Origin: Fimbriosthenelais zetlandica
Lineage: Eukaryota
Length of the DNA stretch: 64,000 bases
Reading direction: 5' to 3'
Assembly (NCBI GenBank): GCA_977030845.1
Contig: OZ365118.1
Span: 18,786,001-18,850,000, forward strand
This document shows positions 21,104-52,268 of this stretch, piece by piece. The notes under the pieces were generated by a model. That model ran no database searches. It was not told where the DNA came from and worked only from the letters and a program-made list of their open reading frames with translations. The translations under genes were made by a program, and so were the position numbers. Every line of letters starts with the position of its first letter. Position 1 is the first letter of the stretch.

Positions 21104-21354
21104 TCATGTCCTTGTCACTGTAGAGGGATGTATGGGATGCCAATGTCGGCAACAGAAGGCAATGATGACTGCAGATAGACAGTACAAGAACACAGACGCT
21201 GAAGTGCGCTGAGCAGCTGACCCCAGGTACTGTTGCTGTCCCTGGTCCTTCCGCTCGTCCTCCTCCGTGGCGCGGATATCCTTGGTTTGAGTCCGTGGGG
21301 AGGGACTCGGAGCTGGTGTCTTCTCATTTTTAGGACACCGCTGGCTGATGCGAT
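21104..21354 (-). CDS. Gene A terminal exon: (D)RISQRCPKNEKTPAPSPSPRTQTKDIRATEEDERKDQGQQQYLGSAAQRTSASVFLYCLSAVIIAFCCRHWHPIHPSTVTRT*
   Basis: Pyrimidine-rich acceptor ending tttcag at 21355, phase 1, TGA at 21104-21106; P/T-rich charged stalk followed by a 17-residue hydrophobic segment. Confidence 0.88.
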
Positions 21355-21592
21355 CTGAAAAAGGTGGAATTTGAGCAATAAAATACTATAATAATACTAA
21401 GAAAAGTCCATAAATAACAAACAGTTAAATACAATTTCACAAGATTGTATAATCAAGAAATTCTTTAGGAATTAAGAAATATGTACCTTCTACATATCCC
21501 TAATTCCAGTAGACAGAACTTCTAAAGTCTGTTACTTTCTCTTTTTAAATATTTTAATATTTCAACAAGGACATGTAAGAGTAGAGTAGTAC

Positions 21593-21734
21593 CATGGGGG
21601 ACCTGGAGTTGGAGGTCTGAATCTCGGGGTACTGACGGGTCGTTCTCCTCCTCCATCCCACACTGAGCTCGTGTTAACCGGTAAGCACTCTTCCACGGTT
21701 TATAATTCATCCTCTCTGGGTATGTGTAAATCAC
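21593..21734 (-). CDS. Gene A exon: VIYTYPERMNYKPWKSAYRLTRAQCGMEEENDPSVPRDSDLQLQVPH
   Basis: Acceptor gtgtttctcttgagcag. The donor ATG|gtacta is weak but gives the required phase 1 and the same 142-nt length as the paralogous exon 35509-35650. Confidence 0.75.
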
Positions 21735-22216
21735 CTGCTCAAGAGAAACACACATCAAATCACGTCCATTTTCCATTATCATTTGTGTTTTACCCAAAGT
21801 TTACTGACTGTTTCATAACTTCCTTATATATATACACTTTTCCAATGTTTCTGGTCAAATGTTAAGAACAATTTCTATCATATCTAATACCCTATGGATA
21901 AAACAGCGTTCAATATGCAAAGTATGTAAGATTCTATTAGATTCTATTCTAAGTCATACTAAGAATAAACTCTTCCGTCTTATTTCCTGAAGTGGGCTGA
22001 GATATTTGGCATTTTCATATCGATTAGTACTTCACAGTAGAGAACCAGAGAATCTTATACTTGTCATTCTAGAAGAATCTTATCTGTGAAACATTTAAAA
22101 GAATTCTTTGAGAGGCTGAATGGGGAGAGAGTTGGCAGCCAAGAATCACTTTGATGTCTCCACAGTTTGGCTGGAGACTCAGAGAGTAAGCTTAGACGAG
22201 ATCAAACAAAACATAC

Positions 22217-22305
22217 CCAGCAAGAAAATATTTTTGTCTCAGGATTTTGCGTGATGAGGAAGCTCCTTCCCTCGGCTAGATTGACATAGGCCTTGCACTC
22301 AAACT
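22217..22305 (-). CDS. Gene A exon: (E)FECKAYVNLAEGRSFLITQNPETKIFSCW
   Basis: Acceptor atttttaattgcag, donor TGG|gtatgt, 89 nt, phase 1 to 0. Confidence 0.9.
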
Positions 22306-22554
22306 CTGCAATTAAAAATAAAGTAAATCTTCAAGGTTTTTAACGAGGAAGGTGAAGGTATTCATGGTTCAATCAGCCATTACAGTCTAGTGTAGAGCTA
22401 GTACAAACAACACGATAGTGGCCAAACTTGGGTTTCTCCATTTTAATACTATCGTACCACTGCTACCACTACTTCTATGCTACCTCCATCAGACATCTTA
22501 TCTTTTTGTTAACTTGATCAATGTTTTAATGCCTTAAGCCATTGGCATACACAC

Positions 22555-22737
22555 CTTGTGTGAACCTGAATCGGCCTAAACATCTGTATAGAGTGAGCTG
22601 TAGTCGAGGTCTGATAGCACAGATCTCCTCATCCCAGTCAGACAGCTGACCACTACACCGGTGACCTCTAGGTAATGTCACATTAACGTCAATGGTACCG
22701 CGCAGTCCGCAGCTGTTGGGGGACGTCAATGGTCCAG
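22555..22737 (-). CDS. Gene A exon (domain B2): (S)GPLTSPNSCGLRGTIDVNVTLPRGHRCSGQLSDWDEEICAIRPRLQLTLYRCLGRFRFTQ
   Basis: Acceptor atttgtattttag, donor AAG|gtgtgt, 183 nt, phase 1 to 1. Confidence 0.9.
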
Positions 22738-22942
22738 CTAAAATACAAATAGCAATTAATAAATTAGTAATTATATAAAATAGCAATTATATATCAAAGA
22801 TATCTTTGGTTGTATTAAAAAGATAATACATCAATGTAGGCTGCCAATTACATAAAAATATATGATTGCATTAAATATATACCATATATAAAAGTACCAA
22901 GTACTTCAAATAACTAATAAGACTAAGTTCTCATGAACTCAC

Positions 22943-23047
22943 AGACTAATATCTTGTACTCGGAGCTCCGTATTAACCCTCCCAGTGGCTCAGGGTCATT
23001 CTTGAAATCACAAAGTTTGAAGGACCTATCGGTTGTCTCACTTTTTG
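22943..23047 (-). CDS. Gene A exon: (S)KSETTDRSFKLCDFKNDPEPLGGLIRSSEYKILV
   Basis: Acceptor gtgttattttcag, donor TCT|gtgagt, 105 nt, phase 1 to 1. Confidence 0.86.
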
Positions 23048-26000
23048 CTGAAAATAACACATGAATATATTAATTTACATCGCCTTAGAGAGACAAATTC
23101 CTGCAAAAATCTTATTTCAGTATCGAGTGACATTGCCTAAGCCTTGCATTAATGTGTGACTCATGGGCCTCGGCTTGTATTCCCTCTTCGACCAGATTAT
23201 TTAGGATGCTGACATTTTTTTAAACTGTGACATTTTTTAAACTAACGTAGAGCAAAGGAAGTACATGTAAATCGATCATAGCGAAACAACTCGAGCAAAA
23301 GGAGGAGGAAATGAGAAGTGGGTGGAAGGCCGAGAGCCTGAAACTAATACAGAATGGTCTGCCACACATATAACCCTGACCGAGTCTCACACAGCCAGCA
23401 GTGCACGGGATAACACAGGGATTAGCTCGACATCCAGGGAAATGGATATTCACTCACAACATGAGCTCTTTTTTTGCCGGTTTCCTTCTAACAAAAGTGT
23501 TAAAGAAGTCATCTTGGGGCGGAAATATCCGAGTGGTGTGGATGTTTGTCTAGGGCCAGGACAACCGTGGACCTCAAGGCTAAAAAAACACAGCTAGATT
23601 TCTCCAGGGTGGACAGCCATGCCGGGGCCGGAAATTAAGGCGTACAGATGGTGTTAATAGAGGCATGGCTGTGATAACAATAGATGGAGGAGTCACTCCA
23701 TGAGCTGCTCACCACACCCAGGGTCAGACCCAGAGAGACTCATGACTCAACATAATGTTATATAGCCTAAGAATCAAGTGTTTAAATTATCAGACGCAAA
23801 ACTATCAGATCAGATTCAGAAAAAGAATTCTCATCTTTTGGTGCTAGCACATGCATGAGGTCTACCCTCTGATTGACTCAGTGTTTTGACATACAGTGTC
23901 GAAATCAAAATCGGTGGGTCATGCTTGTGCATGGAATTATGTATTTCTTAAGAATGTTTAAGAATGTGGACGCATTCATCATGAAAATGCGACAGATTCT
24001 GATTCCTAGAGCACATCTCAACTGCATCAGAACTTGCAACTGCAGAACTTGCAACTGCATTCCCCCTCCACTGGGGCCCTCGATTCGCCCTTTCTACTCT
24101 TAAGCCTAACTCTCCCTCCCTCCTATCTCCACAGATAGCCATGTTGAAGCAACTACTAACAGTGAAAGATAATTTATATCGTTTAGCAGACGACTGCATG
24201 GTTTATTAGGGTATAGCTCAACAACTCTTTGCCATTCTGCAACCAGAAGTACATTTGGCTGCCATTTTGAGCCGTTATAACGGGTAGCGGGTGACAACTC
24301 GCACCGTTTTCCCGTTAGTTCCCAGATTTGCCGATGGTGGCGCACGGTTATTGGATCCATTGGGGTTGAACGAACTAGCCTACTCGCGTTCCATTAACGG
24401 CTCCCAAATCCATTGTTATGGGATTTGACAATAAATTTGTGAATAAAAATTAACATTTACATTAGGCTTGACCCTCTGAGCAAGTTCAAAAGCCCCAGAT
24501 TCTTTTAATGTACTGGTGAAATCGAGCTAAAAAGCAACAGTAATCCACAATAGGCCTAATATTTTCACCACCCCTGATTCTAAAGAAAACCCATTACTTA
24601 TTCATGAAAGCAGATGTAAAGGAGGAGAAAAGAAAAATGAGAAAACTGAGTTGGATTGTGGTATCAATCACAGCAGTACAGGAGAGTAGAGAGGTTTCTC
24701 TTGTGAACGCGTGACACTGGAACATGCGGGAAGAGAGGTGGGAGGCGGCACGCAAGGTAAACGAGGGGGAGGGTGGGGGGGGGGGAGGGGTGATTAACTG
24801 GGAGAATTGGGATCAGATAAGACCTTATCTCCAACTAAAATCACACACAAATATATCACTCTAAACCATGGAGACAATACATAATATTCATTATTTTTTA
24901 TTGAGGGAAACGTTGGGAATATTTAAAACTATAGATCTCTAGACTATGTTTGATTTCAAGATCATCTTGCAATACTGCAGCTAAAATAGTTTCTTCATAT
25001 ACTTCAAGGCCACACATTTTTGAGACAGACTATTATATCCCAGAGAGTTGAGGATATTATGTTTCAGCGCAATGGGAAATGTTATAACAATGCTGCCTCA
25101 AGACATGAAAATAAAAATAGAAATAAAATAATGTGAGGTGAGTAGGTGTACAGGAGCTGAATTCAGTCTCATAGTTACGAATGTCCAAGAAAATTAGTTA
25201 AATTGAATCATAAAATGTCTAAACCTGATAGCTTGAGAGAAATCCACATTAAGGGGATTGGAATCATCTAGAATCCAATCGTTCAATCGTTACTTTTCGG
25301 CCCAAACCAGCCTGAACTGTGATTTTATCAGAAAATCAGTTTTTTCCAGGAATTTTACAAAGCCTGTTATTGCCTGAATCTAGCTATAAAAATCGCCATT
25401 TTTTCCCTGAGAAATGCTTTCAAAATACCTTCACCTTAAGGCGTAATGAAGTGGGGAGGACGTAAAAGTGATTTTCCTTTGGGAAACACTGAAGTAATGT
25501 TTTAGATAATCACGTGTTCGCTCCTAAATGAGACATTTTATTGTAATGAGGAATGGTGGGCATGATGGCAGGTCTTTATACAGCGGTACATTTTACAAGT
25601 TTATATCAAATCACAGGGGATTTGTATGTCCAGTAGGGAACATTAGGCACATTTTAACATTAGTCTTTCATAATACACTCAGAGTATATACTTTGTTGAT
25701 GAAATTATCCCCAATTATCGAGAGACAAAATGGTTCAAAAGAGTTAGGATATAACTGTGAAGAAAAGTTTTAAAATGGACACGGACACGTCTTGTAAAAA
25801 GTATAGTGGGGGCGGGTGTTGTATTTCATCTCACAAATCTGATTTTAAATAACTGTATGAAACTATATGGTCCTGCCGGCAACTGTACAGGACCTCACCC
25901 GGGGGACCTCACTGTAATTTATATTTGAAATGCAGAATATGTGGATCAGTGTTTGGGTCCAATTTCCATCATTAGTTTTGGAAACAGTATATTATATCCA

Positions 26001-27054
26001 CTTTAAACATCTGTTTTAATTGTGAGTTGGATTAATTTGGGCTGGGATAGTGTTGGTTTTTAACCCCAGGCTGAGTTTAATATTCATACTGGACAGAGTT
26101 ACATTGTCTGAGCTGCCGGCACGTCACAGATGGATTTCTTGCCGACTTGACAAATGGCGTCTCTACGTCACTTGAGTGGCCAATTACCTTCACATGAAAA
26201 ACGTCTGTCCAGGCATTGAGATCATGGTTTCAAACTGAAAGCATTCTCAGTTAATAGATTGGTACTTGCATTAGATGTGAGCTAAAAATGCGTGCATTTG
26301 ATAATTTGAACTAAAGGATCACGAGAGACAGATGGTTTTGTCAGAGCTACATTTTTTTAATTAACATTGGGAGTCTTGGAGGTGAGGGTTTGTAACATTG
26401 TGGACGTTTTCATGTGTTATTTGATTTGTATAGGTTTTGACCCATGTTAACCCATGTAGCCCTGTACCATCACTCAGCCCTATTGATGGCAGCAGTAGCA
26501 TCTTATTACAGCTGATGGTAGCTGGAAGGCCCCGGATCATGGTCAGAAAGGATCCAATCCTTCCCTCTGGTCATTACTGCCCAGTCCCTGACCCTGAGGT
26601 GTGGTAGATAAAGCCACCTAACACCCTACAGCTGACCCTGACCACTGACCACCCCTCACAGCTCCCCCTACCGCCAGCTGTACACGTCAGGTCAGACCAG
26701 CGACACCCGACCCCTCCAACAATCCCCAGAACAAAGAGTCATTACCCAGTCAGCAGCCGGCCTGCATGCTAATGACCGGGACATGATCGCAGGGCATCAT
26801 GGCATCCCGGTCTCCACCCTATCTGACCCCTTGTTTAATCTTATCTTCTTTACCGACATAAGATAGGCCCAGCTTGTGGCTGTCCCTATGCAGCTACAAT
26901 TAATCCCCAAACCACTTCTCCGATCCTCTTGTGCCATGGGGCAAAGTAAACAGACAGGGACTGGGGCGGTGAATACGCGGCATATGTGGTGATCGCTTTC
27001 ACCATGGCAGAACACGCTATGTCAACATTTATTGCAAGAAAACTGGCCACTTAC

Positions 27055-27122
27055 AAATCTGGAACTGTAGGGTGGTGCCGTCCGTGTCCGGATTGAAGTG
27101 GACGCACGTGTAGCGCGGGCGG
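27055..27122 (-). CDS. Gene A exon: (C)RPRYTCVHFNPDTDGTTLQFQI
   Basis: Acceptor cctattttcctgtttcag, donor TTT|gtaagt, 68 nt, phase 2 to 1. Confidence 0.92.
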
Positions 27123-27832: not shown

Positions 27833-28034
27833 CAGCCATTCGTGTAATAGGAGAGGAGTTTGAATCGGGTGAAAGCCCAGTGTTTACTCTTGCAAATAAA
27901 CTCCCCCAGGGTAGAAAAAGCAAGATGGCCGCCGTGGATACGGACTCGTTCTTCCCGATCCGTCTCAAAGAGGAACCAGTCCTTCCTAATGTTCCCAGGG
28001 AACCTGCATTCTGGTCTAGTAGATGGTAACAAAT
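27833..28034 (-). CDS. Gene A exon (domain A2): (N)LLPSTRPECRFPGNIRKDWFLFETDREERVRIHGGHLAFSTLGEFICKSKHWAFTRFKLLSYYTNG(C)
   Basis: Acceptor tttgttacttgcag, donor CTG|gtgaga, 202 nt, phase 1 to 2. Confidence 0.92.
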
Positions 28035-30050: not shown

Positions 30051-31559
30051 AGACTGGTACATGAGACAGTCGCCTGGAACTACCAGGGCCCAATGCTGCC
30101 TCAGGATACATGTATTTGTATTCAGATTACATATATAAGAGACCGAGTCTTCATTTCTCACAGTCTCATCATTCTCCTCTTCCAAAGGGAAAACAAATCT
30201 TTCAGAAAGAGCAACTCATTACATGATGATTGCTTTAGAGAAGAATAAAACACTAAATCTATAACTTGTGAATCTGAGAACTCAGGCAATTTGAAAAGGA
30301 ACATTGCAGGCTGACATATCATATCCACGATGAAACCGCAATCAGTGGAAGAGAGTATGTGAAATAGAAAGATAGAATCTGATACACAACTCATCAACTC
30401 TCCACCACGCTATAAAAGGTTTCAAACTCGTTGCTAGTCTTAGAAGGACTCTTGTATGGATGTGGGGATTTTTGGTTAGCTTTCATACAAGTCCAGTGGA
30501 CACACATTCAAAAATGATCTTTGAAAAGTGTAGTACGAAGGCAAACAAGCCGGGTAGTGGGAGTAACCTCCGTCAATTCTACTCAGAGACACATTATACC
30601 AGAGGACGTGTGTGCTGAATATGCTCAGCTTGTTTGCTCAGAGATTAGAATACAGGCCGGTTGTTTCTCTCAGCTAAGTGAGCAGGGAAGTGCCACCATT
30701 TTTATTCTTTAGCATTCCTTCAAGAGAGCTAAAAGAATTACATTAATTCCTCTCGCCACCAAGTGTCAAATCGTATTAAGGGCCGGTTCCTGGCCGGGTT
30801 TTACTTGACTGTTCAGCAATAACTGGCAAAAATAAGAGCAGCTGCACTGTATCAAGACGGAGGGCTGAATCCGAGGTACAGTGACACAGAGAGATGGTCT
30901 ATACCGATAGACAAATACTCAACTATAATATCCTTATATATAGACATAGTCAACACATATGTCACACACTCTCATCACCTTCAGGCCTATATAAGTCACA
31001 TATAGCCTGGGTTTAAGGCTTTAAGATGCTTCAGGATTGCTGGCGTGGCAAAAATCACAATTCATTCATTCTTGCTTTAGGGGCTTAAGAGTCTATAGGA
31101 TGGGCCCAGTATGAGGGAAGCTAAGCAAAGAGGAATAACGCTTTGAGCCGAAAGGTTGAAATATATGAGAGTATAAATTGCCTGAATGTGTTTATGAATA
31201 CTTCAAAGCCTGTGTTATGACCTGTCAACATCTACAATATGTGTAGACATGATATACATTCTCACTGTATGTGAGCCCCGTAAAGGTCAAGCTCAACATG
31301 CAGCCACATCTAAATGTAGCCCTATTATTCCTCCCTTTCAACAATCATTGGCACTGAGCTTGGGTTTGTACAAATGAACTGTCACAGAGTAAGGTGAGAG
31401 AGTAAGGTGAGAGTGTATAGGAAGGATAGTCCACATGGAAAGGTATGTAGAAGAGGGCAAAGCTGGCAAGGATGGCAAGAAACAATGGTTTTTTCTAGTA
31501 AATGTTAGATATCTAAGACTTGGACAAAAATATTGATCTAAATATCACAGAATACTTAC

Positions 31560-31679
31560 TACATAACCCACAGGAACGTTTGCAATAGTTAGCGTATTCG
31601 TGCAAGGCACTGTTTGTGCACTTCCCCTCCTTGGCATGTTTTACACACTGATCGCTTTCATCGTAGCAGATCCCAGGCT
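31560..31679 (-). CDS. Gene A ShKT-domain exon: (E)PGICYDESDQCVKHAKEGKCTNSALHEYANYCKRSCGLC
   Basis: Acceptor tttttctgtttttcag, donor TA|gtaagt, 120 nt, phase 1 to 1; ShK pattern C-x6-C-x8-C-x11-C-x3-C-x2-C ending CKRSCGLC. Confidence 0.92.
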
Positions 31680-34600
31680 CTGAAAAACAGAAAAACGTCT
31701 ATGAATAAATGACATTATTAAATCAACCCACTCGAAATCTCAAGTGTTCCAAACTCTTACAAATCCAGCCTTAAAAACTCCACCCATCATATGAATGGCA
31801 TTCTCTTCAAATTGCAAAGATTACAGAATACTCATCAGAAAAAAGCCTATGAACTTTTAAAAGGTTGTATATGGCAAGCGCATTAAAGTTCAAATTTGTC
31901 GGGGTATAAAATGATGATTGGTGCCTCAGAATAATGCGGATAGAGGATGAGTTATGGTGAGGTTCAGACTAACCAGATCTGATGAATGACTAGGAGGGGG
32001 ATGGGGGGTGGGTGGGGGGGTTGTTCTGTGCACACCACAAGCCCCCAACCTTGTATATGTACACTAATTAGGCTCCCTGGTGTATAGGACCATCCGTGCC
32101 TAGACTTTTTAACAGCATTACTTAATGGATTTAATGGGGGTGTGCCTCCCAGGGCTAAGCAATTTCATTATGAGTGCGAGCCAAACTTGGCATCTACATC
32201 AGCCAAGTGCAGGAATCAATTTTTTAAAACGGGATGGGGGATTCATCAAATTAGTGGCTGATCTTTTTCAAGAGATATTTCAAACTGGCGTTAAGCAGCT
32301 TGACTAGAGTCCATATATAAAGGTAACAAATATGGTAGAAGAAAAGAGGAATGAGGAGTGAAACAATGCAAATTGGATATCAAAGTTTTTATTGGCAACT
32401 TTTATGCCACTTTCCGAAAGACAACCAGGAAACTTGTAAAATGAAGCCTGTGCACTTAGTTCGATGCAATATTAATTGATCCCAATTCATCAGTGCATGA
32501 ATTTGATATGAAAAGCTCAAATGTTGCTTGATAGCGAGGAGGCATGGATGGAAGGCGATATGGGAGTATATGAGAGAGGCAGCGCCTTGATTAGACATTA
32601 TCATAACTCAATAGGAAGTCTACAACTGTTAGATCCTACCCCCGGGGAGCTCTTCCCACTCCCTCCCTCCTCCTCACGTCTATATACCCTGATAACAGTC
32701 TTCACTCAATTTGCTGTTTACACATTACACCGCCTCCCTCCTGCCACAACTGGCCTGATTGTATTAATAACAATGCAAATGCTCCACAAAAATGCCTCCT
32801 CTGCTGCGCCATAGTCAAACAGCCAACTTGCAATAGGCGTATAAGTTTGGCTATATCAAAGGTGGCCTAAAACACATCAACACAGAGCGCCACCCATTAC
32901 AGGGGACAGGCCAGCTCTGTAATTCCTGTTCCAACCTCTCGGGACAGGAGTTTTGAAAGCAGCACTTTTCGGGATGTTTTTCTATTCTGTTTGACCAACA
33001 GTCGAGTGTTGATTCGTATTACGCGGCTTTGTACCCCACTCTACACAATGCTTATGTCGTTCCTGCCAATCGAAGGCTTTGTCATTGGCCCCAACCATAT
33101 ATGTCAATGTCGTTTACCTGAACGGGTTGGAACAAGTTCTTTATGCCATTGACCTCTAAAGGATGCATGTTAAAGGGGAATAAAACACATAATCTTTGAC
33201 ATAGTCTGACACAGCCAATTACACATGACGGTAGATAGGGTGAATATTGTAGAGAAATAGTCGGCATTTTACCGCCAATGCCTACATCTATTAGGTACAG
33301 CAATTTATCCTGTAACTTGAAAACCAGCCCACTGTCAGACAGAAATGATTTACTGACTGGTGAAAAAAAACATGCAAGGTTTAAATGTGATTAAAAAGCC
33401 TTGCATTATTCCCACCTCTGGCCATATGTGTCATACAGAAACATAAATTGTTGTAGGGAATTTGTCCTGACCGATGTTCCCGCAGATGATGCAATCTGCA
33501 GTAGTAGGCCTACTCCCTACTAATCAATATTATCATAGAGAAATCTCTGAGGAATATGTAGCAATGGGCCTAATTCATAAGACAAATGCTAAAGGTTACA
33601 CTTCAGCAAGTGAGGCACTGGGGAAGACGGGAGAGTCCCCCATTCGTTATCACTACTATCTTATCAAGGTACGGCCACTGATTACAGAAACTACCGCTAG
33701 GGGATGGGGCAGGAGGGGGAAGCCGGCAGAGGCCCGGGAGACAGAATAAATTGACTGAATCTCCTGTTGGGCTTTAACATCGCAATGTTAGCTGAGCTGA
33801 GAATCTTCCTCCTGGGATGAGAAATACAGAAGTTCCTAATGAACATCCAGTCCGGGCTTGATCCAGGCTGGAGGCTGGAGCAGGAATGCAGTGCCTCTCG
33901 CGGGCATTTATAACACTAGTACTCGTGGAGTGTTTAGTTAGAACCCCCGGGGTGTAATAATACAGCCATGTCTTTATATTATAGACATGTAAAGACACAA
34001 GGACACTCCAGGCTGGTGAGTGGTACTGTGACCATGTCATAACTCCCTCACTGAGCAATGTTCACCACTCTCCACCTACATCTCTAGTGAGGGATAGTCA
34101 TCAACCTTTGTACTGTGTTACACAGTACATACAGACTTTATGTGGGACGTATTTACTTATTTAGCTAGTATATTCTATATGGTTATTACACCCAATTATC
34201 AGCGGCCAGTACGCGCCATATATCTTCATTGTCATTGTAAATATGCAATAAATGTAACTAATCTGGATCAGGTAATTAGGACGGGGCTAGAAATGCAATA
34301 TATGACTCCCATATCTCTACTGTCATTACCATTAATATAACGTTAATATGATAGATATGTCCATCATGCTCATATCTAGAAGATATCAATATTTCACTCC
34401 AGCATCAAGTGAAATATTTATAACAATTCCAATGAAAATCTTGGAGAAATTCACCTCCAACATAGCACTGATGGAAAAATCCCAATAACTTAAAAATGAA
34501 ATATAACATGTAGAGAGAACTATACTATAACAGCTCAGTGACAATCATGAGAGGGATTGAACGAAGTGGGGAAGTTGAATCTTGAAACTGAAATGTAAGG

Positions 34601-35508: not shown

Positions 35509-35650
35509 CGCCTCTCTTCATGTGGAGCTCAGCGTGTAGGACGTCTTCTAGCCCGGCAGGTCTGGAGTACCGTCTCTCATTCGGGCAAACCGGACTAAAA
35601 TATAGCTCTACAGTAAGCTCTATATTCATTTCTAGATCACGGGGAAAGCG
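35509..35650 (-). CDS. Gene A exon: RFPRDLEMNIELTVELYFSPVCPNERRYSRPAGLEDVLHAELHMKRG
   Basis: Acceptor gtgtttattttcag, donor GCG|gtaagg, 142 nt, phase 0 to 1. Confidence 0.88.
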
Positions 35651-35839: not shown

Positions 35840-35931
35840 CAATACAAATTGTGGCTGCTTATCTGGCTCTGCTGCTACTATGAACTGAAAATCATCTTCT
35901 ATCCAATGGCCCCAAACTTGCAGGGTCAATT
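35840..35931 (-). CDS. Gene A exon: (E)LTLQVWGHWIEDDFQFIVAAEPDKQPQFVL
   Basis: Acceptor tttctttctacattcacag, donor TTG|gtaagt, 92 nt, phase 1 to 0. Confidence 0.9.
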
Positions 35932-36490: not shown

Positions 36491-36608
36491 CTTGTCTATG
36501 GTTCATAAAAGGACTGCAGGACTTCTCTGGAAATTTAAATGAAATGCCCTCCCCTCTGACACACTCTGTCTCCATCCGCGACGGCCGCCATATTGAATGA
36601 CAGAGCTT
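36491..36608 (-). CDS. Gene A exon: KLCHSIWRPSRMETECVRGEGISFKFPEKSCSPFMNHRQ
   Basis: Acceptor ttccttttacag, donor AAG|gtaagt, 118 nt, only one open frame, phase 0 to 1. Confidence 0.9.
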
Positions 36609-37489: not shown

Positions 37490-37569
37490 CTTGCTCCTTT
37501 CATACATAAAGGTAGTAAAATCAAAACCGCCAACAATAGGCGAAAAAGACCACTCCTCAAGTTTTGGGG
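37490..37569 (-). CDS. Gene A exon (domain B1 start): (A)PKLEEWSFSPIVGGFDFTTFMYERSK
   Basis: Acceptor tttttctctcttttcttgcag, donor AAG|gtaggt, 80 nt, phase 1 to 0. Confidence 0.88.
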
Positions 37570-38501: not shown

Positions 38502-38576
38502 CGAACCAAGGCCACAATTCTCTTTGCATCAGGTGTTCGCCACATAACTCGTTATGGTTTGCCTCTCTAGGTGGTG
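38502..38576 (-). CDS. Gene A exon: (S)PPREANHNELCGEHLMQRELWPWF
   Basis: Acceptor ttgtccattgcag, donor TCG|gtaagt, 75 nt, phase 1 to 1. Confidence 0.88.
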
Positions 38577-39497: not shown

Positions 39498-39499
<2 letters not shown>

Positions 39500-39573
<74 letters not shown>

Positions 39574-39730
39574 GTGAGAGCGTGGGAGATACTGAGAGAC
39601 AGAGTGAGAGAGAGGGAAAGGGAGATGGATAGTGAGAAAGAGACATGTAGAGGGAGAACGAGATGGAGAGGGAGGGAGAGGAGATAGGGATGGGGACAGA
39701 GACAGAGACACTCAGACAGAGGGAGAGAGT
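39500..39730. repeat. (GA)n microsatellite (pure 39500-39570) with degenerate GA-rich extension
   Basis: Seen directly. Confidence 0.95.
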
Positions 39731-41262: not shown

Positions 41263-41339
41263 CGACTCAGACCGAGCTGCTCCGCCCAACAGCTTATCCA
41301 ACCACTTAAAGCAGTGAGGAGCAATAAGGTGGTGGACAT
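41263..41339 (-). CDS. Candidate orphan first exon with signal-peptide-like sequence MSTTLLLLTALSGWISCWAEQLGLS
   Basis: GCCGCCCGCCATG context, TATA-like motifs upstream, donor CG|gtatga. It is phase 2 and does not fit the next gene A exon. Confidence 0.3.
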
Positions 41340-42350
41340 GGCGGGCGGCTGGCCAGGCCTATATAATGATGTCAATCTCCTACACTTATAAAGGTAGCAT
41401 AACGGATGGGTGGAGGGATTCTCAGGGTACGGACACATGAAGGCATGAATGAATGAAGGTGGGGGCGGGGGAGCTGGGATTGGCAATAACGAGTGAAGGC
41501 ATTTTAAAAGGCACAAAGTGGGTTGAGAACGGTAAAGGCTAACTGGTCCTAGAGATGACTATAGGTGTAATATGGCTGGTGTGTGTGTTAGATCGTTATT
41601 GTTCACTACACATACAGTCTGTATATGATACTTCACTGACTGTTAAGTCTATATGTGTCCATTATTACCTCCATGGATCTCATGTCAACTACATTCACAC
41701 TACACCAGACAATATAATATAGGAGGATTTCATTTCATTTCATTCTGATGTCTGAATACATGAAGATAACTGTACTATTATATTACATTTATATAGAGAT
41801 ACCGAGATTAAGCTAAATATCATACAGCAGATTATGATAGAAGGTATTTAGAAATATAATATCCTGAAAAGTATGATCTAGCATTCTATTCATATAAATC
41901 TAATGTATTATTTCATTCTCATATATTGAGGCCCATTGCTTTCTTCTTGTGATGAATTTAATTGTAACTGACCACACACAATCTGTCCCCCAGCCTGTGA
42001 ATTAATGGGGTGGGGGTGGGTTAAGTTTCCCCTGCCTTCATTGTGTTATTTACTGTTAATGAAGCCTTCACCTTATAAAGACATTGTAAGGATATGAGGC
42101 CTGGTGGTATGGCAGTAATTTAGTGGGGAGTCTGTCTATAGGTTGTAGGTTAACCCTGCCAGTGGTTAGTGACAAGGCAGTGATGAATGACTGGTACAGG
42201 AGGAGGAGATGAGAGAGACGAGCCATGTGTGAGCTTACAGAAGGCCAGAGATACTCCACTCATGGTGGAAAGATGCCAGGTACAACTTACTCTCATCACC
42301 AGCCCCCAATACTGCACACGTACTGGTGTAACGAGTATATACTGTAATAG

Positions 42351-42450
42351 ACAGGCACAGACTGGGTGCAACAGGCACAGAATGGGTGTAACAGGCACAG
42401 AATGGGTGCGATAGGCACAGACTGGGTGCGATAGGCACAGACTGTGGGCA
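42351..42450. repeat. About 5 copies of a 20-bp unit (AC/TAGGCACAGACTGGGTGC..)
   Basis: Seen directly. Confidence 0.85.
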
Positions 42451-43124
42451 ACAAGTAACTGGGTATATATATTTATCCCTATCACTGGGTGACAATCTTT
42501 AACACTTGTTGCAACAGGCACACAATCGGTTGATTCTTGAAAAGATACCAAGAAAGTGAATAAGACAAATATAGCTTTCTCAACAATATTCTTAGCCATC
42601 TACTTGTATGTATCCCTCGGCATACATGTATGTAAGTATAGCTTGTGAAAGTGTGAGAAGTTGGTCAAGGCTAGGGTCTTCTTTCCGTTCTATATTTAAA
42701 ATTTCATCTCTCATCTCTTTAAAAATGGCTCTAAACTCGATCTATGGCAGCTAGCATGCCGGCTTTGTAGGGCTGCAGGCGGAATGATATGCTCATGGCC
42801 AGGCGGACGCCAGAACGCCCATTACATTATTAAGGCTAACCATGTTTGCCTATTACGATAATTGAGTTTTTACGTGCTGTCACTGGCCTTTTGTATCTCT
42901 ATGCTGTGAAATAATATGGTTATCATGACATGTATATGTATCTAAAACTAGATGCTGACATTCAACACCATCCATAACTAAAATAGCCCAACACCATCCA
43001 AAGCTAAAATAGCCAGCTTCATATGAAAAGAAAATGGTAAACACATTGACACTGGATACGAATCAAAACAAGAATCAGATGACACTATAAAACATTTATT
43101 AATAGAAAGTGAGTGTATACTTAC

Positions 43125-43189
43125 ATGACCAAACCTGCACTATATTTTTGTTTCTGGGCACGAACTTCATACATAGATAATAGGTCCGC
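43125..43189 (-). CDS. Gene A exon: (G)RTYYLCMKFVPRNKNIVQVWS
   Basis: Acceptor catttctctcattccag, donor CAT|gtaagt, 65 nt, phase 2 to 1; parallels RPRYTCVHF...LQFQI of A2. Confidence 0.9.
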
Positions 43190-45778
43190 CTGGAATGAGA
43201 GAAATGAGGGAAATGTGAGTGAGAGATGAGGGAAATGTGAGTGAGAAATGAGTGAAAGATGGTAGTGTGGGTGGTTGGGTGTAGAAGGGAGTGGGAGGTG
43301 GGCGTGGGAGGTTGGGTGTTTGAGGGAGTGGGAGGGGGAGAGGCCATGTTTTGGGAGCTGTCAGGGAATGCCAGGTGATAGCTCTATGAATGATCCATCA
43401 CACCTGAGGGATCCAAGGCTTACTGCCAGTACTCCTCCTCATATTCACAACAACTTAATAATTAATTTTAAACCAGAACTTTTAACTGAGAGATAGGAAT
43501 GATGTGATCGTACATCATTGTAATTTGTTTGGCAATTTATTCCAACTGTCAGATCGACGTATTTAACCCTACAATCATTCATTATAAGAGTTTAATAGTT
43601 GTATCAAACCGCTTAAGTGTTAAACACCTGATTTCATTTTATTTTTTTTTTCATTATTCCTAAGTGTCACTTTTGATTAAAAGAATTGTGGCTCATAAAA
43701 TAAGCCATATGTATATGGCGGGTATTTTTACTCTTCATGATCTGCCAGGAACTGAGACCAATGTTCATTTGAAATGCGTGTCACGAATGAATGGATAAAT
43801 CAATAGAGACAGACATGGAAGAAAATTACATATGACTGGCATGGGTGTAGAGAGCATGGAGCAGAATGACAATGTGAGTTAAATACAGCTGAATACAGGC
43901 TGCAGGTATACATTAAACAGCCCCACAATTCCATCCCCTCAGGGGACTGTCTTATTCCATTCAAGTAAGTATTGAAAAGCTAATGATATACATTCATATA
44001 GGCTACCACTGAAGCTCATTCTCCACGTTAAATAGTCATATCACAAGCTTTTACTTCCCATGAACTATATTATTGTGGCTGGCATACTTTGGGTATTATC
44101 CCAGCAATTTATATCATATAAATCAATCTCATTTTTTGTGAGGATTTTCTAGGAAAGGTCAGAATGCCTGGTAATATATAACCCGGGTTGTACAGAATGT
44201 TCACAATGAGTGATTGTCGTTATATGAATATTTTCATAACCACAGGGGATTTATCCATCTTATACGGGGATAAAAAACGCATTCTTCACTCTACAAACAA
44301 CATCTATACAGAGTAAAGTGCCCCAGGAGAACACCAGCCCGTTTGCCCTGTCCCAGGCCCAGCAGAGCTTGTAACAAACAGTCAAATCTCACCCAAGGGA
44401 CGGCAGCAATTCTGGGTCAGTCCTAATGAGCTAACAGTGCGGAGAGTTATGAAAGATTAAACCAGCGAGCCGCTATGTGGTATAGATATACTCCGTGACA
44501 ACTTACGTTCACAGGGGAGGGGCCCGGTTCAATTCTCCAGACAATCTCCAAATTGCATGGCCATTGTCCTTCTACACCCAGTGCTGCTAACTGGGATATC
44601 AAATCCCAGTCATGTCTCAGCTACAAGAGTATCAGAAGGACCATCATAGTTAAAGTCATGAATGTCCATTGACTGATATCTATATCTTGCTCCATCATTT
44701 GCACTCAAAATCAGCTTGGACAGATGACCAAAATGACCATTATGTTGAGTTGCGATTCCAACTTCTAGTAGGCCTAAACAATATGAGATGTCTTTGATGC
44801 GCCACAGTGGACAAACGTTGACATAGAGTATAGGTGTGTATGCAGTAGCGAAGCAAGTCATGTTTATATATAGTATGAGTTATAGTTGGGAGCAGCTCGC
44901 GTCCTCTCCCCACCAGCTCTCTGACTGCTCGGGGCAACAATTGGTTGTCACTGACCACAGAGTCTATTACACACCCATATAGACAGTCATAAATAGAGGC
45001 AGGTCAGAGGAGCGAGGACTGGAGTGGAATGTCAATGGACCAGAGCTGGCCTAACCCACATAAACATCCCACCAATATCTCATATAGAAATCACAGTACA
45101 TGACTTCCCCCAGATCCGCCCCCGCCCCCCGCCTACTTCTTTTACTTCATGTGGCCATCAGACTTTGAGATTTTCAAGATTAAGGCTTGTCTTGTGTTTG
45201 AGAAATGGTGGTCTTTGTGAAAGGGGAAGGTCTTTGATGGCAGGATTTGTCAGGGATGGGATGGGGAACGGTCCCGTATGACAGGGTCAGCTGAAAAATG
45301 ATCCAATTGGTCTTTACAGGTCGCCAGCAGAAATTGATGGGCTCTAGGCAATCTGATTAATAACCAGGGGAACTATTTATGACATACATATCAAGATTGT
45401 ATTTTTATGAAGCAATATATTGAAATGGAGGCCTTGGAAATGGAATAAGCGACTCCCGACAATGTCAATAACTGATTAAAAGTGAGGGTAAAGATCAGTC
45501 GTGGTGGCCGGGTGGACATAAAAGTGATTCCATGTACCCCACAGGTCTATAGATTTGTGGGTCAATTTCTCTCAGCGTCGTTTGGCCCAATGGTCAGTGG
45601 CCGGGTTCCTCGCTGACCCCTAACTGGGCTGACCCAAGCACCCCCCAGGCCAGCCTGTACATAAAAGATTCCACCCTAACTCACAATGCGGGATGTGTGA
45701 GTCAAACCAGTCCCAGAACGCTTCTTATTGGCTGAGCCATGTGTCATGTGATAAGAAATAAACAAGCCTGCTATCACA

Positions 45779-45792
45779 GTGCCATCTAGCGG
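45779..45792 (-). promoter_or_regulatory. CTCF-type motif CCGCTAGATGGCAC
   Basis: Consensus match; binding not shown. Confidence 0.4.
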
Positions 45793-46440
45793 GCTCTGAT
45801 GAGTTGGTTGGTCGGTGCCTGCTTTAGACGCTGCCATAGGAGAAGGGTTCAAGCTGCTAAACAGGAGTTGAGGATTATTGGTTTGCCACCCACTGCCAAT
45901 AGAAGCAAGCCGTATCAGTAGCCACACCAATCCCACCTACTGACAATAGCATGCTGCTCAAATTACCCCAGAAAAGGCATGGCTATGTGGAGTAAATTAG
46001 CTGGCCCCATTCCTCTCCTATCATGGGTGTGAACATGGGAGTTTCTAGACAAATTATCACTCAGCTTCCCTTCCCTGAATAAGCTGGTCCTGCGTTACAT
46101 GTATACGAATCAATCCTTGGCCATACACTTCTAAAGAGGGAAATATATCCCTTAGTTCTTTATGAGATTTTCGATCATGAAGTGGAAAGGAAGCTTGACA
46201 TTTCAGATAGCTTGCAAAGAAGCTACAGGACAGGCATCAGTAATATCATTAACACACTTATTTAAGTAATTGAAGTAGGAAAGAAGACAAGTGTGAAGTG
46301 TATAATTCTCCATTCGACTAATACAAGTCTTTTTGGGGTTGACAATCACTTGAAAAGCTATTGAGTGCAACCCAAGTTCAGGCTTATAATGCGTGAAGTA
46401 GGTTTGGAAATTCTGGGTGAATGGTTGGTGTGTGTAAGCC

Positions 46441-47018
46441 AGCAATAAGAGGTGAGGGTATGGGTGTTACAACCAGCAATAAGAGGTGAGGATATGGGTG
46501 TTACAGCTAGTAATAAGAGGTGAGGGTATGGGTGTTACAACCAGCAATAAGAGGTGAGGGTATGGGTGTTACAGCTAGCAATAAGAGGTGAGGATATGGG
46601 TGTTACAACCAGCAATAAGAGGTGAGGATATGGGTGTTACAACCAGCAATAAGAGGTGAGGATATGGGTGTTACAGCTAGTAATAAGAGGTGAGGGTATG
46701 GATGTTACAACCAGCAATAAGCGGTGAGGGTATGGGTGTTACAGCTAGCAATAAGCGGTGAACGTATGGGTGTTACAACCAGCAATAAGCGGTGAGGGTA
46801 TGTGTGTTACAACCAGCAATAAGCGGTGAGGGTATGGGTGTTACAACCAGCAATAAGCGGTGAGGGTATGGATGTTACAACCAGCAATAAGCGGTGAGGG
46901 TATGGGTGTTACAACCAGCAATAAGCGGTGAGGGTATGGGTGTTACAACCAGCAATAAGCGGTGAGGGTATGGGTGTTACAACCAGCAATAAGCGGTGAA
47001 GATATGGGTGTTACAACC
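46441..47018. repeat. Minisatellite, 17 copies of a 34-bp unit (AGCAATAAG[A/C]GGTGAGGGTATGGGTGTTACAACC)
   Basis: Units counted directly; head-to-tail with no spacers. Confidence 0.95.
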
Positions 47019-50000
47019 TGCCTGGTGAATGATGTATGGCAGCTATAGTAGAGATGGCGGGGGCTTTCTTGTCCCATTCACCTCTCAACACAGGGGATAT
47101 GTTAGAAGATGGAATCATGGTGATGTATATCAATATTACACACTGTAAACAGCCAGGCCGACCAGCCCAATAACTTACACCTCAACTCCTAGCGGGAATA
47201 AGGCGGGCAGGCCGGGCCTACCAGGGGACAGCCCGGTAAAATGGACTGTGGGATGGCATTGTTATTGGATGAAATTCCAATGGGAGATCACACAGGAGAT
47301 AAATTGATTTTCAGCCTTGAAGATGCTCAGGAATATGGGATCTGAATGCTGAGCTACAAGTGGAAATATCAGGAGTTAAAGCGTATAGCTTTGATTGTTT
47401 TGTTCCACTGACTGAAACATATTATTACGTGTTATTGCCAGGTTTCTAATTATATACATTGTGGGACAGAAAGGTCATAGTGTGAAAAAGCAGTAGAAAG
47501 GTGGAATCAATCCGTTCCCCTTTAACTGTACACTACAAACAACTTATATTAAAGTGAGAATATTGACCTGGGAATACACATGTAATATCAAAGCAAAAAG
47601 TTCAATACTCAGCCACGATTGTTCATATATGAACACCTACACTGAGCTGAGTATGTACGTGTACAGAGGGCCCACCATACACGGGCGGTATATGAACCCC
47701 TCCCAGTTAACCAATAATCACTTACTTTGCACCTTTGTCACCTTGACTACATCTGTGCCCATTCAGCCTCGTTCCCACCTCTTCTAGCCTCTTTTTTGCC
47801 CAATCACCACCGTGTAATGAATACAGAGGTCTTTTAGGCCCCGGATGAGGCACCATTTCCGGTGGTTGGTGACCAGTCCCTATCTCGCCCATTGATTTGT
47901 CCTGAGACGGAAATTTGGTATTTTCTCAACACAACCTTTCCAGCCGTATCCATCAATAATACTGACCTGAGTTATTTCTTTTCTATTTGGATAAGCTTAT
48001 ATGAGATGGCGGGGAATGTAATTTTGATGTGATTCATGGTCTTAGTTTTATAGTCCTGGCTTCGCTGGAGAAGAATGGAGGATGCTTAGTGAATGATGAA
48101 TGAGCTAGGGTGAGGGTAGAGTAGGTAGATCTAGGATACAGGATTCTCTCAGCGAGTTTCTACATCTTTGACTGGATTTGTATATAACTCACAAGTCACA
48201 ACTTCCATATGCTCAACGATCAAAAAATTTGTTTTGTCAGAATCCAATAAATCTTTTGTCAGGCATTTCTATAGTGTTCAATTAGATGATCTGAATTCAC
48301 TGTACTGAACACTGTAAAGGACTGTAGGGGAATTAGCTACAGTGTTGCCTACTTTTCCCATCTATGAGGGGAGTAGAGGGAGTGCCAGGAGGGTGAGGGT
48401 GATGGTATTTGCCTTGGCAGGGTGACTTTATTGATAACACCAAGTTATGTTCAGCTTCTGGCTAGTGAGGGGGTGCCCTGTATGATGGCCTACAGTTGAA
48501 GCCAGTAAAAGAAGGCTGACATTCGCCAGTTAGTGTGACATGTAATATGGCACATCATTTCTATTATAATGCCAGGTTTTCATGGATGCGAATGAGAACC
48601 GATGAGACAAAGTGTCTGATGAGACCTCATTTGATGTAAAAAGTGTGATTTTTAGGAAGGGAACCCACTTTGTGCTGGAAAAAATGAACCTGCTCCTTTA
48701 ATAGTGGAAATATTTCAACTCGACTCTTTTACAAAAAAGGTGGGTTTTATTACAAAATGTTGGCAGTAATGGGTTGTGTTTTTGACCAGTGAACAGAGCA
48801 GGCGGTGTACCTGGAGGCTGGGAGCCCCCGCGGGTAGAGGACACCTGGGGGGCTCGGGGGGAATGCGCCCCTAATGGGTACTGACAACTCCCTGCACCAG
48901 CGGGGACAAGGTGGGACGGGCAGGGCGGGCAGTGTCAGTAAAATGCTAGGTAATCGGCCTCCATGCTGACGGCTTGGACTCAATAGGATGTCCTAGACTT
49001 GCTAACAACAAGCTGGAGAAGATCACTATAGCTGGCAGCTCAGGCCAAACTTACCACACAAAACCAATAAAGATGGACCGGGAAATCTCCCAGGGTCAGC
49101 CTCCAACATGGGAAGGGTCTTAACAAAGCTTGACTGGTATTATATTTTTATCATGCTTCATTTTAAAAGGCCGCTGCTCTCAGGGGATTAAGGATGCAGT
49201 TTCGAGGCATAACAGGAGAGTTCCATCCAGGATTTTGTCAAGATCAACAAAGCATGTTGGTTTAGGGATCTAAGTTTAAAATCTGAGTTGAGAAGCTCAG
49301 CGTTTCTTCCTCTCTCTGACCTGGAGGTGAACTTGTGCTAGTGATAATCACCTCTCATTGTGACAGCAGTATCAGAAACATCACTGACAGTTCATTCCTG
49401 ACATTGACAGCAGTGACAGCTCTCTTTTCACAATGACAACATGTCTCCCTCCATCACCCTGGGTCAGGGTCATTCCACCCCCTCAGACTTAGGGTTTGTT
49501 ACTTAAAAACTTTTTTTCCCTCGCATCATCCAATGGCATGTGGGTTTTTTTGTAGAATGGGCCCCAGGGTTCTATTGACCCCTGAGCTTTACCCACGCAG
49601 ACGTGTGAGCGCATGCCCGTGGCGAGCGACACCTGGGGGTGGGATAAATCAGGCGAGCTGACGCCATTATGACCTCTACTGTGACCTCCACCACGCCATC
49701 TATTGTTTTATAGAGGAGGCTATGAGAGGCTTTAATCTGGTGTGGTGTTAAACACGCCTGACTACATCTATACGCCTGTCATTTACAGCTACACATTCTA
49801 CAAGCCTACCATTGATCCTTACAACACCACTCTCTGTGAACTTGTACAAAAAATCTACATCACTGTAATCGGCTTACGATAAGATGAGATCGATCCACTT
49901 CTAATGTTTAAAAAAGAAAACATTTAAACCTTATAAAGAATGAGGACTGCATGGTGAAAGCATGAAAGGTTATCTTCCTCCTTTGTATGTTTTCTATGAG

Positions 50001-51720
50001 CAATTGAAGAGTAAAGCTTGGAGGTGCACTTGTAAGGAGGATGTGTTCTATAGTGTTCTGACCTACTATATAGGGAAACCTATGAGATGGCGAGATCGGA
50101 AGTATCTTTGTTGTTGCTAAAACAAGGAAAAGAATCGTCATCCTGATACTTAGTAACATTATTAATCATGACATTACTTAATACAATAATTATATCATCA
50201 CAGTCCAAACAGTGAGGAGATATTTAGTTTTTAGCCTTAGTAACATGATAAGGATGCAATAATGACTCAGCAAAATTAGGCAAATATGAGGGGAGGGGAG
50301 AGATGACACTTGGCTGGGCTCATGTAACTGCATCACGTCATGTCATATTGACGTCAGCGTCTCACAGTGTGACGTCACATTGTCATGGACGTGTTGTCAA
50401 GACCACACCATTAGCTGTCAAGGTCAGAGATGGCAGGGTATAATGCGTACATAGGAAATGAGGGCAGACAAGCAGAAGGCATGCCAGCCTACAGTTATTT
50501 GCCTCTGGTCATTTTTCCCCTTTTATTTGTGATTTGTTTATGTAGTTTGTGGCCGGCTGGCTGGCGCCGGTGGTCGGGAGGGTGAGGTTGGCATGGGAGT
50601 AGAATGACCAGTGAACTAGGACTGATGATTGGTCACTGTGAATCTAGAGAAATCAAATTAGCACCCGAGTATGGGGCGAGGCATCTCCCTGCAGGATGTG
50701 GGCCTGGATGTATGTACCATCATCATAATGGACAAATGGCAACGAACGGCGATATGAGAAAAGGCTACTGACTAGACAGACTAGACTGGTACGGCAGATC
50801 ACGCCAAATGTCTCCATCACTGACCAAGAACAGACGTATTGTACAACTTAAATAATTTACTGGGGTAAAAAATGTACCAGTCACTCAATCTTGAACAAGT
50901 CTCCTCATGGTTACCAATGTCATTGTAAATCAAAACCATATCCATCCTCAAATAGAATATTAATTACTCAGATGGTTCCACATTATTTCAGAGAATCTGC
51001 TATATGTGATGATCATCTTTAGCATTATTCAAGGCTGAAAATATCTCAATCATAAGACCAGACTTAAAATGGTGGAGAAGTTGGATAAATAAGCCAGGGT
51101 TATCATTGTGTTGATTCTTCCATACTCAGACTGGGTGCTAGGAGTTGCCCGCTCTAATGGAAAATATAGGTGAAATGGAGTGGCTTTTTACAAGGTGTAC
51201 GTGTTGTACGTGACCAATAAAAAAGTGGCCAGCAGCAAGCATAGTGTTTTCACCTAGAGTGTACACACCTCACGATTTTATCATGGCACTTCCTACCAGG
51301 GCACACCTACTTGTCATTCACAGGTTTATTGAATAGGAGGAACACATTCAGGATGTCCCTGTACCCTACAGGGCTCATAATCATGTCACAGTGGGTCTCA
51401 CTGCCCGTCTAGACTACTCTCTGTCCATACAGATAAAATTATATTATAACTTTAACAATGTCCATACATGTAATTACACATAGATAATAGACAGAACGTC
51501 ATTTATTATAAACTCCTGGAGTCTGTTTCAAAAGGAGTATTAGCAATGTTAAGTCTATGGCTAATATTCGTTTTGAAACAGACTTCTGGTTCTCAACAAG
51601 TGGACTTCGTGGGCACATTGTCCTTGGCAGTGGACCTAAACTCTTTGTACAGTAATTACTTTGAAAAGAACTAGAGTAACAGTTGAGTAAAGTGAGATGA
51701 TAACAGTGATTGAGACTGAC

Positions 51721-51839
51721 CCTTTATCATGATGCTGGACGCGGTACTTGCCCCCATCCTCCTCCTGCATACACACTCTGCTGTAATGTAGCTCTCTCTG
51801 AAAACATGGCACCGTCCCGGTATACTCATGACACTGAGC
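51721..51839 (-). CDS. Gene A exon: AQCHEYTGTVPCFQRELHYSRVCMQEEDGGKYRVQHHDKG
   Basis: Acceptor gttactgtgttttcag, donor GG|gtcagt, 119 nt, phase 0 to 2. A second in-frame acceptor lies at 51797. Confidence 0.82.
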
Positions 51840-52098
51840 CTGAAAACACAGTAACAATCACTTATAGCAAACTGATTAATAATATCACTATTATATTCTG
51901 AAATATCATTCATATGATACTAAAAATAAAGCCAACAAAAATGTCAGATCTTTAATGCGACCAATTCAATGATGGTTGTCCAAAGTATAGGCCTACTATG
52001 TGGAAATATCTGGACCAAGCTTAACAGAAATTGTTATGATCAGGCCATTGAATAGGCAGCTGGAAGGAGGAGAGAGAGTGAGGATTATTTTGACACAC

Positions 52099-52268
52099 CT
52101 TGTATTTGAGCTTGGCCTTGATGTCCATCTCGGCCACTGTAATCTCCAGCTGCGTGTCCCACAGGTTGGTATTGTCGATAAACTTGGTTTCTGACGTCCA
52201 TGTTGGGTCTTTACCATCCGCCATGGGCATGCGCAGAAACTTAGGGAATACACACTGTCCACGAAGGC
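52099..52268 (-). CDS. Gene A exon (domain A1 start): xLRGQCVFPKFLRMPMADGKDPTWTSETKFIDNTNLWDTQLEITVAEMDIKAKLKYK
   Basis: Acceptor ttactttttccag, donor AAG|gtgtgt, 170 nt, phase 1 to 0; CxFP...W motif also seen in A2. Confidence 0.88.

Follow-up and report, generated by a model that had tools for sequence, protein, structure and literature searches.

A predicted tethered surface protein of Fimbriosthenelais zetlandica with four putative lipocalin-like barrels and a central ShK domain

The BmK1 and AcK1 peptides and the toxin domain of MMP23 act on Kv1.3, and in the ShK toxin the pore-blocking pair, Lys22-Tyr23, occupies the positions six and five residues ahead of Cys4, the fourth cysteine. 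A different kind of described surface protein is built from barrels: APCDD1, which holds the Wnt palmitoleate, has a membrane anchor and two barrels resembling lipocalins (PMC10193966), and Lazarillo is a glycosylphosphatidylinositol (GPI)-linked insect lipocalin, showing that a lipocalin can work in GPI-tethered form (PMC10746777). Here we describe a gene of Fimbriosthenelais zetlandica whose predicted product would hold an ShK domain amid four lipocalin-like barrels. The gene lies on the minus strand of a 64,000-nucleotide stretch (contig OZ365118.1, forward-strand positions 18,786,001 to 18,850,000; assembly GCA_977030845.1) of gap-free, AT-rich animal DNA, which we call the window and whose positions are used throughout. 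An earlier reading of this DNA, made from its letters and referred to below as the sequence-only reading, had joined 16 exons between 21104 and 52268 into one open frame, without naming the strand. It described a surface protein in which an ShK domain stands between two copies of a pair of cysteine-rich modules (A1-B1 and A2-B2), followed by a stalk and a hydrophobic tail.

Exons were placed by tblastn with orthologous proteins combined with splice-site scores. The orthologues came from a HMMER protein search with one exon (exon 11), which gave 76 database hits, many of them exon-sized fragments. The best hit was 61% identical, this genome's own protein was not among the hits, and the full-length proteins returned were those of Capitella, Lineus, Tubulanus and Liolophura, plus a Helobdella protein. 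Using this homology-guided placement, we found that 16 minus-strand exons running from 52268 down to 21104 do splice into a single open frame. All borders are GT-AG with pyrimidine tracts, the phases are compatible, and the donors are mostly gtaagt, gtgagt or gtatgt. Coordinate 21104 is the final base of the TGA stop (21106-21104), and 52268 is not a start codon, being the first base past a strong acceptor (ttttccag/GCC). The span 21104-52268 stands as the extent of exons 2-17 and falls short at its upstream end, as the signal-peptide exon lies outside it, with a candidate at 53673-53556. Including this tentative exon 1, the model has 17 exons and a coding sequence of 2,139 bases for 712 residues, with zero internal stops. 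An ab initio dynamic programme combining splice-site and codon scores was tried and dropped; it returned 36 exons, and then 22, 18 or 9 according to the exon penalty.

The spliced protein aligns collinearly with all four orthologues, from the first conserved cysteine through the tail. BLASTP gave 37% identity over 597 residues (E = 2e-133) to Capitella teleta CAPTEDRAFT_227924 (698 residues) and 33% over 679 residues (E = 3e-119) to Lineus longissimus LOC135493212 (689-698 residues), with E-values of 1e-105 and 5e-103 to Tubulanus polymorphus LOC141905324 (637 residues) and Liolophura sinensis LOC135473592 (564 residues, N-terminally short), respectively. Conserved cysteines are in register across the orthologues, apart from lineage-specific ones. 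For the intron comparison, exon boundaries in the Capitella gene and the Lineus RefSeq gene were located exactly on the respective proteins. Fourteen of the 16 introns are common with Capitella in phase and alignment column (within one or two columns) and 12 of the 16 with Lineus, an agreement far beyond chance. The shared introns include those at the signal-peptide/A1 and ShK/A2 junctions, and exon lengths of 65, 75, 80, 92, 202 and 105 nt are identical in this comparison. The last junction appears best placed at 21593/21354, which was chosen over 21603/21385 because it is in phase 1, as in Capitella and Lineus, and because it puts exactly 28 residues between the final conserved cysteine and the one before it, the number also found in Capitella, Lineus and Liolophura. 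At this junction exon 16 has a weak donor (G/gtacta). This comparative support indicates that the locus is one intact 17-exon gene, exon 1 being tentative, and that the predicted protein is an orthologue-grade relative of CAPTEDRAFT_227924 and LOC135493212.

The product reads, in order, candidate signal peptide, A1, B1, ShK, A2, B2, stalk and hydrophobic tail; from A1 onwards, the spliced frame and the Pfam assignments of its relatives both bear out the order first proposed. In the orthologues, Pfam assigned DUF7043 (A1), weak DUF7042 (B1), ShK, DUF7043/DUF7044 (A2) and DUF7042 (B2). DUF7043 (PF23070) scored up to 77.6 bits in the orthologues against a cut-off of 27, and 76 bits in intronless paralogues from the same genome. 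DUF7042 (PF23069) was above its cut-off at B2 in Lineus and Liolophura (40 bits) and under it at B1 in the orthologues (16-22 bits), and scored 47.7 bits in the own-genome paralogue L032. Among the single exons of this gene, a Pfam match was obtained only for ShK, with none for DUF7043 or DUF7042, and a genome-wide PF23070 scan listed no exon of the gene. Its own modules matched hidden Markov models (HMMs) made from the Pfam-assigned segments of relatives, at E-values of 8e-24 (A1), 5e-31 (B1), 1.5e-37 (A2) and 3e-21 (B2). A appears to correspond to DUF7043 and B to DUF7042, the families that the sequence-only reading had named. The ShK motif at 31671-31561 (minus strand) scored 28 bits for PF01549 against a cut-off of 20.9 in a Pfam scan of window positions 31516-31698 (minus strand); it is the window's sole six-cysteine hit, and the plus strand has no ShK motif. 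No enzyme domain was found in any Pfam scan of relatives, again as first proposed. Profile-profile comparison with hhalign aligned A1 with A2 over the whole module (E = 3e-6) and B1 with B2 weakly (E = 0.007), while A against B was not significant. This supports duplication of A1/A2, and weakly that of B1/B2, visible at profile level only. A self-BLAST of open frames for the A/B duplication had returned tandem-repeat noise and zero exon pairs.

The protein thus appears to be a new member of an already catalogued, unstudied family with the architecture DUF7043-DUF7042-ShK-DUF7043-DUF7042. Its relatives are named 'hypothetical', 'uncharacterized' or 'ShKT domain-containing', and we found no characterised relative and no paper mentioning these DUFs or loci, in agreement with the earlier view of modules without an assigned function. 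The A-B-ShK-A-B architecture, for which the sequence-only reading had suggested a search, occurs in Capitella, Lineus, Tubulanus and Liolophura, and the ESM Atlas holds clusters of ~70 mollusc members with it, suggesting that it is conserved across at least three phyla (annelids, nemerteans and molluscs). Arthropod ESM Atlas clusters carry DUF7042, DUF7043 and DUF7044, with no ShK in the cluster listings.

The same genome holds further members. Three multi-exon paralogues lie on the same contig: the open reading frame (ORF) at 28074-27832 matches them at 50-57% identity, and matches to the first A1 exon and to the ShK exon fall at these three loci as well, in unchanged order. These paralogues carry most exons and all modules, also in the same order, and their matched parts are free of stops. 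The genome-wide PF23070 scan gave 13 further matches, mostly uninterrupted ORFs of 627-800 residues on other contigs, and at least nine intronless DUF7043 ORFs lie elsewhere in the genome (on contigs including C10, C13, C11 and C27). Four intronless genes were fetched and scanned with Pfam (L032:1349-3493, L033:1737-3749, L034:1468-3660 and L035:2039-3922). In L032 and L034 a signal peptide or N-terminal region is accompanied by two DUF7043 matches and one to ShK, with DUF7042 and a hydrophobic tail also present in L032; L033 and L035 gave DUF7043 and DUF7042 only and had no Pfam match to ShK. All four are 19-21% identical to the protein described here, more distant than its cross-phylum orthologues, and would therefore form an older subfamily, possibly one that was anciently retroposed. 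With orthologues in three phyla, the large mollusc clusters and, at home, three multi-exon and at least nine intronless paralogues, the protein is not an unusual one.

Modelling predicts for the A module a lipocalin/calycin-type beta-barrel of eight up-and-down strands, in which conserved disulfides act as braces. The model of the Lineus A2 module, computed from 66 aligned sequences, reached a predicted local distance difference test score (pLDDT) of 87.6 and a predicted template-modelling score (pTM) of 0.81, and has seven antiparallel strands in succession, followed by a short helix and then the closing strand. Using VIA-align, we found that the best 50 rows for this model were mostly lipocalins or similar small barrels, with Z-scores from 8.8 to 5.2: Tp0751 pallilysin (5jk2) scored 8.8, the leukotriene-binding lipocalin LTBP1 7.7, RBP4 6.7, nitrophorin 6.4 and apolipoprotein D 5.5, and the second barrel of APCDD1 scored 5.6-5.7 over 99 residues. 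Foldseek agreed with a lipocalin-type barrel, at weak E-values. Across the family, G-x-W is nearly invariant at the first strand of the A module; here the Trp is kept and Asp stands for Gly. A DUF7042 cluster model from the Atlas superposes on the A2 model at a template-modelling (TM) score of 0.63, and the B modules may accordingly be of the same predicted barrel fold. A mannose-6-phosphate receptor homology (MRH) fold, raised by AlphaFold database (AFDB) hits of the full-length Capitella model that are named 'mannose-6-phosphate / IGF2 receptor', was rejected: those names are automatic, and no MRH chain is among the top 50 of the A2 model.

After the modules comes a stalk (residues 637-680) rich in Pro, Ser, Thr and charged residues. 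The sole hydrophobic window besides the signal peptide follows it (residues 683-698), preceded by the small-residue stretch GSAAQRTSAS. Hydrophobic C-termini after small residues are also present in Capitella, Lineus and Liolophura, and RTSAS is kept in Lineus. The tail of the family looks like a GPI signal, and for this protein a short transmembrane helix would be an equal alternative; either is consistent with the membrane tethering proposed in the sequence-only reading.

On balance, we favour the reading that the protein is a tethered, enzyme-free surface binder with four lipocalin-like barrels and an ShK connector, a function that overall we infer. It would quite probably sit on the outer face of the cell membrane, held there by a GPI anchor, which we think slightly the better guess, or by a short transmembrane helix. 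By analogy with APCDD1 and Lazarillo, the barrels could be the working parts and bind, at the cell surface, an extracellular ligand that is hydrophobic or carries a lipid modification, a suggestion that we make tentatively and at less than even confidence. The ShK domain, placed between the two halves, would serve as a rigid connector or as a knob for protein contacts, and would not block a pore.

Several points weigh against the surface-binder reading. The fold was predicted on the Lineus A2 module and would extend to this protein by homology. The structure prediction and Foldseek search suggested earlier gave a confident barrel for that module, with weak Foldseek support, and did not succeed at full length, where the Capitella model was poor (pLDDT 47.6); the B modules are without a confident model. 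Z-scores of 6 to 9 fall in a range where a common arrangement alone may be shared, and homology to lipocalins may be borderline. No lipocalin family and no APCDDC was found in the Pfam scans of relatives (APCDDC: E up to 5), and the family profile searched against PDB sequences (8e0r included) returned ShK peptides only, with no lipocalin and no APCDD1. The predicted barrel is small (~110-125 residues), its best match, Tp0751, is an adhesin, and a ligand pocket is hypothetical. At the N-terminus, the signal-peptide exon at 53673-53556 is a tentative candidate to which we give an even chance: its signal peptide is of textbook type and its donor is in phase 1, but it would carry 17 residues more than the orthologues, no paralogue similarity was found for it, and the 4.8-5 kb upstream of the paralogues' A1 exons held no signal-peptide exon candidates. 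At the C-terminus, the hydrophobic tail is succeeded by 14 polar residues, an ending that GPI signals do not usually have.

Some of these points would suit an adhesion or matrix protein, in which the four barrels are pocketless protein-binding modules, as in Tp0751, and serve tethered cell-matrix or cell-cell contact. The top rank of Tp0751 pallilysin (Z 8.8), the small size of the barrel, the repetition of the module on a stalk and the expansion of the family, as is often seen in surface recognition families, all point in this direction. However, no adhesion motif or domain is known in the protein, function does not follow from a fold match alone, and other top structural rows are ligand-binding lipocalins; we consider this, the main alternative, rather unlikely.

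The ShK domain itself is real. Its nearest solved sequences are those of BmK1 (2mcr) and AcK1 (2md0), with profile matches also to the MMP23 toxin domain (2k72), and the action of these three on Kv1.3 would fit a tethered ShK presenter, in which an ion channel, of the potassium or another type, is modulated by ShK in cis or in trans and the barrels are a scaffold. Retention of the domain in all four multi-exon paralogues (this gene included) and in all four full-length orthologues fits as well. At the toxin Lys-Tyr register, however, His-Glu occupies the positions six and five residues ahead of Cys4 in this protein, the paralogues and orthologues vary, and the Lys of the dyad is unconserved among them. 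In addition, two of the four intronless paralogues checked (L033 and L035) have no ShK match, and ShK accounts for only 36 of the 712 residues. The domain is thus probably not a channel blocker here, channel block as a conserved role being without support, and we regard a presenter as very unlikely. The four predicted barrels take up ~500 of the 712 residues and are likelier than ShK to be the working parts; the emphasis on an ShK presenter or channel auxiliary protein in the sequence-only reading is without support.

The connection between ShK and A2 can be compared in all four multi-exon copies. In 4/4 copies a phase-1 donor closes the ShK exon immediately past CGLC (A/gtaagt, G/gtatgt, G/gtaagt and A/gtgagt), and the following A2 exon begins at one and the same phase-1 acceptor, which a pyrimidine tract precedes. 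This A2 exon has neither an ATG nor a signal peptide; ShK and A2 would therefore be in one transcript. That two adjacent genes (A1-B1-ShK and A2-B2-tail) were misjoined, or that the locus is an unexpressed pseudogene, is very improbable: a 3.5-kb intron separates the ShK exon from exon 11, the exon 16 donor is weak and the gene model is a comparative one, but exon 11 lacks an ATG or signal peptide and has the acceptor conserved in all four paralogues, the RefSeq models of Lineus, Tubulanus and Liolophura and the Capitella model have the ShK/A2 junction at an identical position and in the same phase, and the 2,139 coding bases hold no stop or frameshift.

The exons, all on the minus strand, are as follows. 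The tentative exon 1 (53556..53673; residues 1-40) is the best signal-peptide-like ATG exon upstream of 52268, and holds the ATG and a candidate signal peptide beginning MMHTANTFVGASLLLLLSSAWA. Exon 2 (52099..52268; residues 40-96) starts A1 (DUF7043) with GQCVFP; its acceptor and donor are in the top 1%, and it has three paralogue matches at E-values of 4e-9 to 4e-5 as well as tblastn hits from orthologues. A1 continues in exon 3 (51721..51839; residues 97-136; tblastn to Capitella) and ends in exon 4 (43125..43189; residues 136-158), which was hit by tblastn and whose length of 65 nt and phases are those of Capitella and Lineus. The A1-B1 linker, with the invariant LC...WPW, is exon 5 (38502..38576; residues 158-183; 75 nt, as in Capitella and Lineus). 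B1, which is DUF7042-like, starts with GGFxF in exon 6 (37490..37569; residues 183-209; 80 nt, as in the same two genes, and tblastn). It runs through exon 7 (36491..36608; residues 210-249), which contains WRPSRMETEC, is 66% identical to Capitella over 35 residues and has a donor score of 8.2, and through exon 8 (35840..35931; residues 249-279; 92 nt, as in Capitella and Lineus). Exon 9 (35509..35650; residues 280-327), supported by tblastn to Liolophura and by its splice sites, ends B1.

The ShK domain, with six cysteines (C331-C366), occupies exon 10 (31560..31679; residues 327-367; PF01549). A2 (DUF7043) starts with PECRFP in exon 11 (27833..28034; residues 367-434), whose 202 nt are exactly the length found in Capitella and Lineus. 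It continues in exon 12 (27055..27122; residues 434-457), with CRPRYTC, a tblastn match to Tubulanus and fitting phases, and ends in exon 13 (22943..23047; residues 457-492), which has 105 nt as in Capitella and tblastn matches to all four orthologues. B2 (DUF7042) starts in exon 14 (22555..22737; residues 492-553), hit by tblastn and with an intron position common with Capitella and Lineus, passes through exon 15 (22217..22305; residues 553-582; tblastn to Liolophura and paralogues) and ends with a conserved QC in exon 16 (21593..21734; residues 583-630). Exon 17 (21104..21354; residues 630-712) encodes the last conserved cysteine, the stalk, GSAAQRTSAS, the hydrophobic tail VFLYCLSAVIIAFCC, the 14 polar residues and the TGA stop.

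Within A1, a 259-nt intron (51840-52098, minus strand) splits what is one continuous exon in the three paralogues, Capitella and Lineus. Its sequence is unique in the genome, on which ground a mobile introner was rejected, and comparison suggests that it is a lineage-specific gain. In the 8.5-kb third intron a 34-bp unit occurs 17 times in tandem (46439-47018; 93% matches). A (GA)n microsatellite, together with two short tandem repeats with units of 20 bp and 22 bp, was found at 39500-39684, 42351-42453 and 43199-43257; the fourth intron contains the first two of these positions, and the remaining one closes the third intron, just before exon 4. The large window ORFs at 7302-7970 (minus), 13218-13637 (plus) and 20438-20962 (minus), which lie outside the coding exons, and at 42153-42599 matched no Pfam family.

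Two observations concern relatives. In Lineus LOC135493212, a 27-nt micro-exon (L031:23798-23824) lies just after the ShK exon, and the listed isoforms differ by 8-9 residues; the ShK-A2 linker of that gene may be alternatively spliced at the micro-exon. Separately, a 4561-residue 'unnamed protein product' (P0070) in a record labelled Coccothraustes coccothraustes has seven weak matches to the A2 exon and no Pfam family, and may represent a mis-prediction or contamination.

The gene itself is ordinary, and the added value lies in the fold assignment and the family census. A checked gene model now exists for this locus, and DUF7043 becomes readable, on the strength of the A2 model, as a small disulfide-braced barrel of the lipocalin kind. 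In turn, a DUF family of molluscs, annelids, nemerteans and arthropods becomes a testable idea, that of tethered multi-barrel binders of hydrophobic ligands. If the barrels bind lipids or lipidated signals, they would provide a second, independent example of the APCDD1 design. A bolder proposal, which we put forward as a long shot, is that these proteins form an unrecognised class of tethered poly-lipocalin receptors that, on the surface of lophotrochozoan cells, capture hydrophobic signals or lipid-modified morphogens (for example, through the lipids of Wnt or Hedgehog), an APCDD1-like logic that would have arisen independently and expanded to more than 12 genes in this genome.

Compared with its closest relatives, in Capitella, Lineus, Tubulanus and Liolophura, the protein has the same module order, cysteine framework, length (~640-700 residues), tail and intron positions at 33-37% identity; it differs in the extra 259-nt A1 intron of its gene and in the 14 polar residues after the tail, and one B1 cysteine pair of Lineus, Tubulanus and Liolophura is absent. 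With the ShK toxin, BmK1, AcK1 and MMP23 it shares the six-cysteine pattern, scored by Pfam as ShK above the cut-off, whereas the domain here stands mid-chain in a 712-residue protein of tethered type and the Lys-Tyr pair is absent at the toxin register. Lipocalins and calycins, Lazarillo and Tp0751 included, have the same eight-stranded up-and-down barrel as that predicted here, and the family has a first strand resembling their G-x-W; lipocalins have 160-180 residues, whereas the A module has ~110-125, with four barrels per chain, more disulfides and no sequence-level match. Mouse APCDD1 (8e0p, 8e0r) has no detectable sequence relation to this protein, and its Z-score against the A2 model is no better than those of generic lipocalins. 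It also differs in that its barrels are of ~230 residues with a helix-loop insert and number two, not four, and in having no ShK and a true transmembrane helix, yet it is likewise a membrane-anchored, enzyme-free protein of tandem, disulfide-braced barrels that are distantly lipocalin-like.

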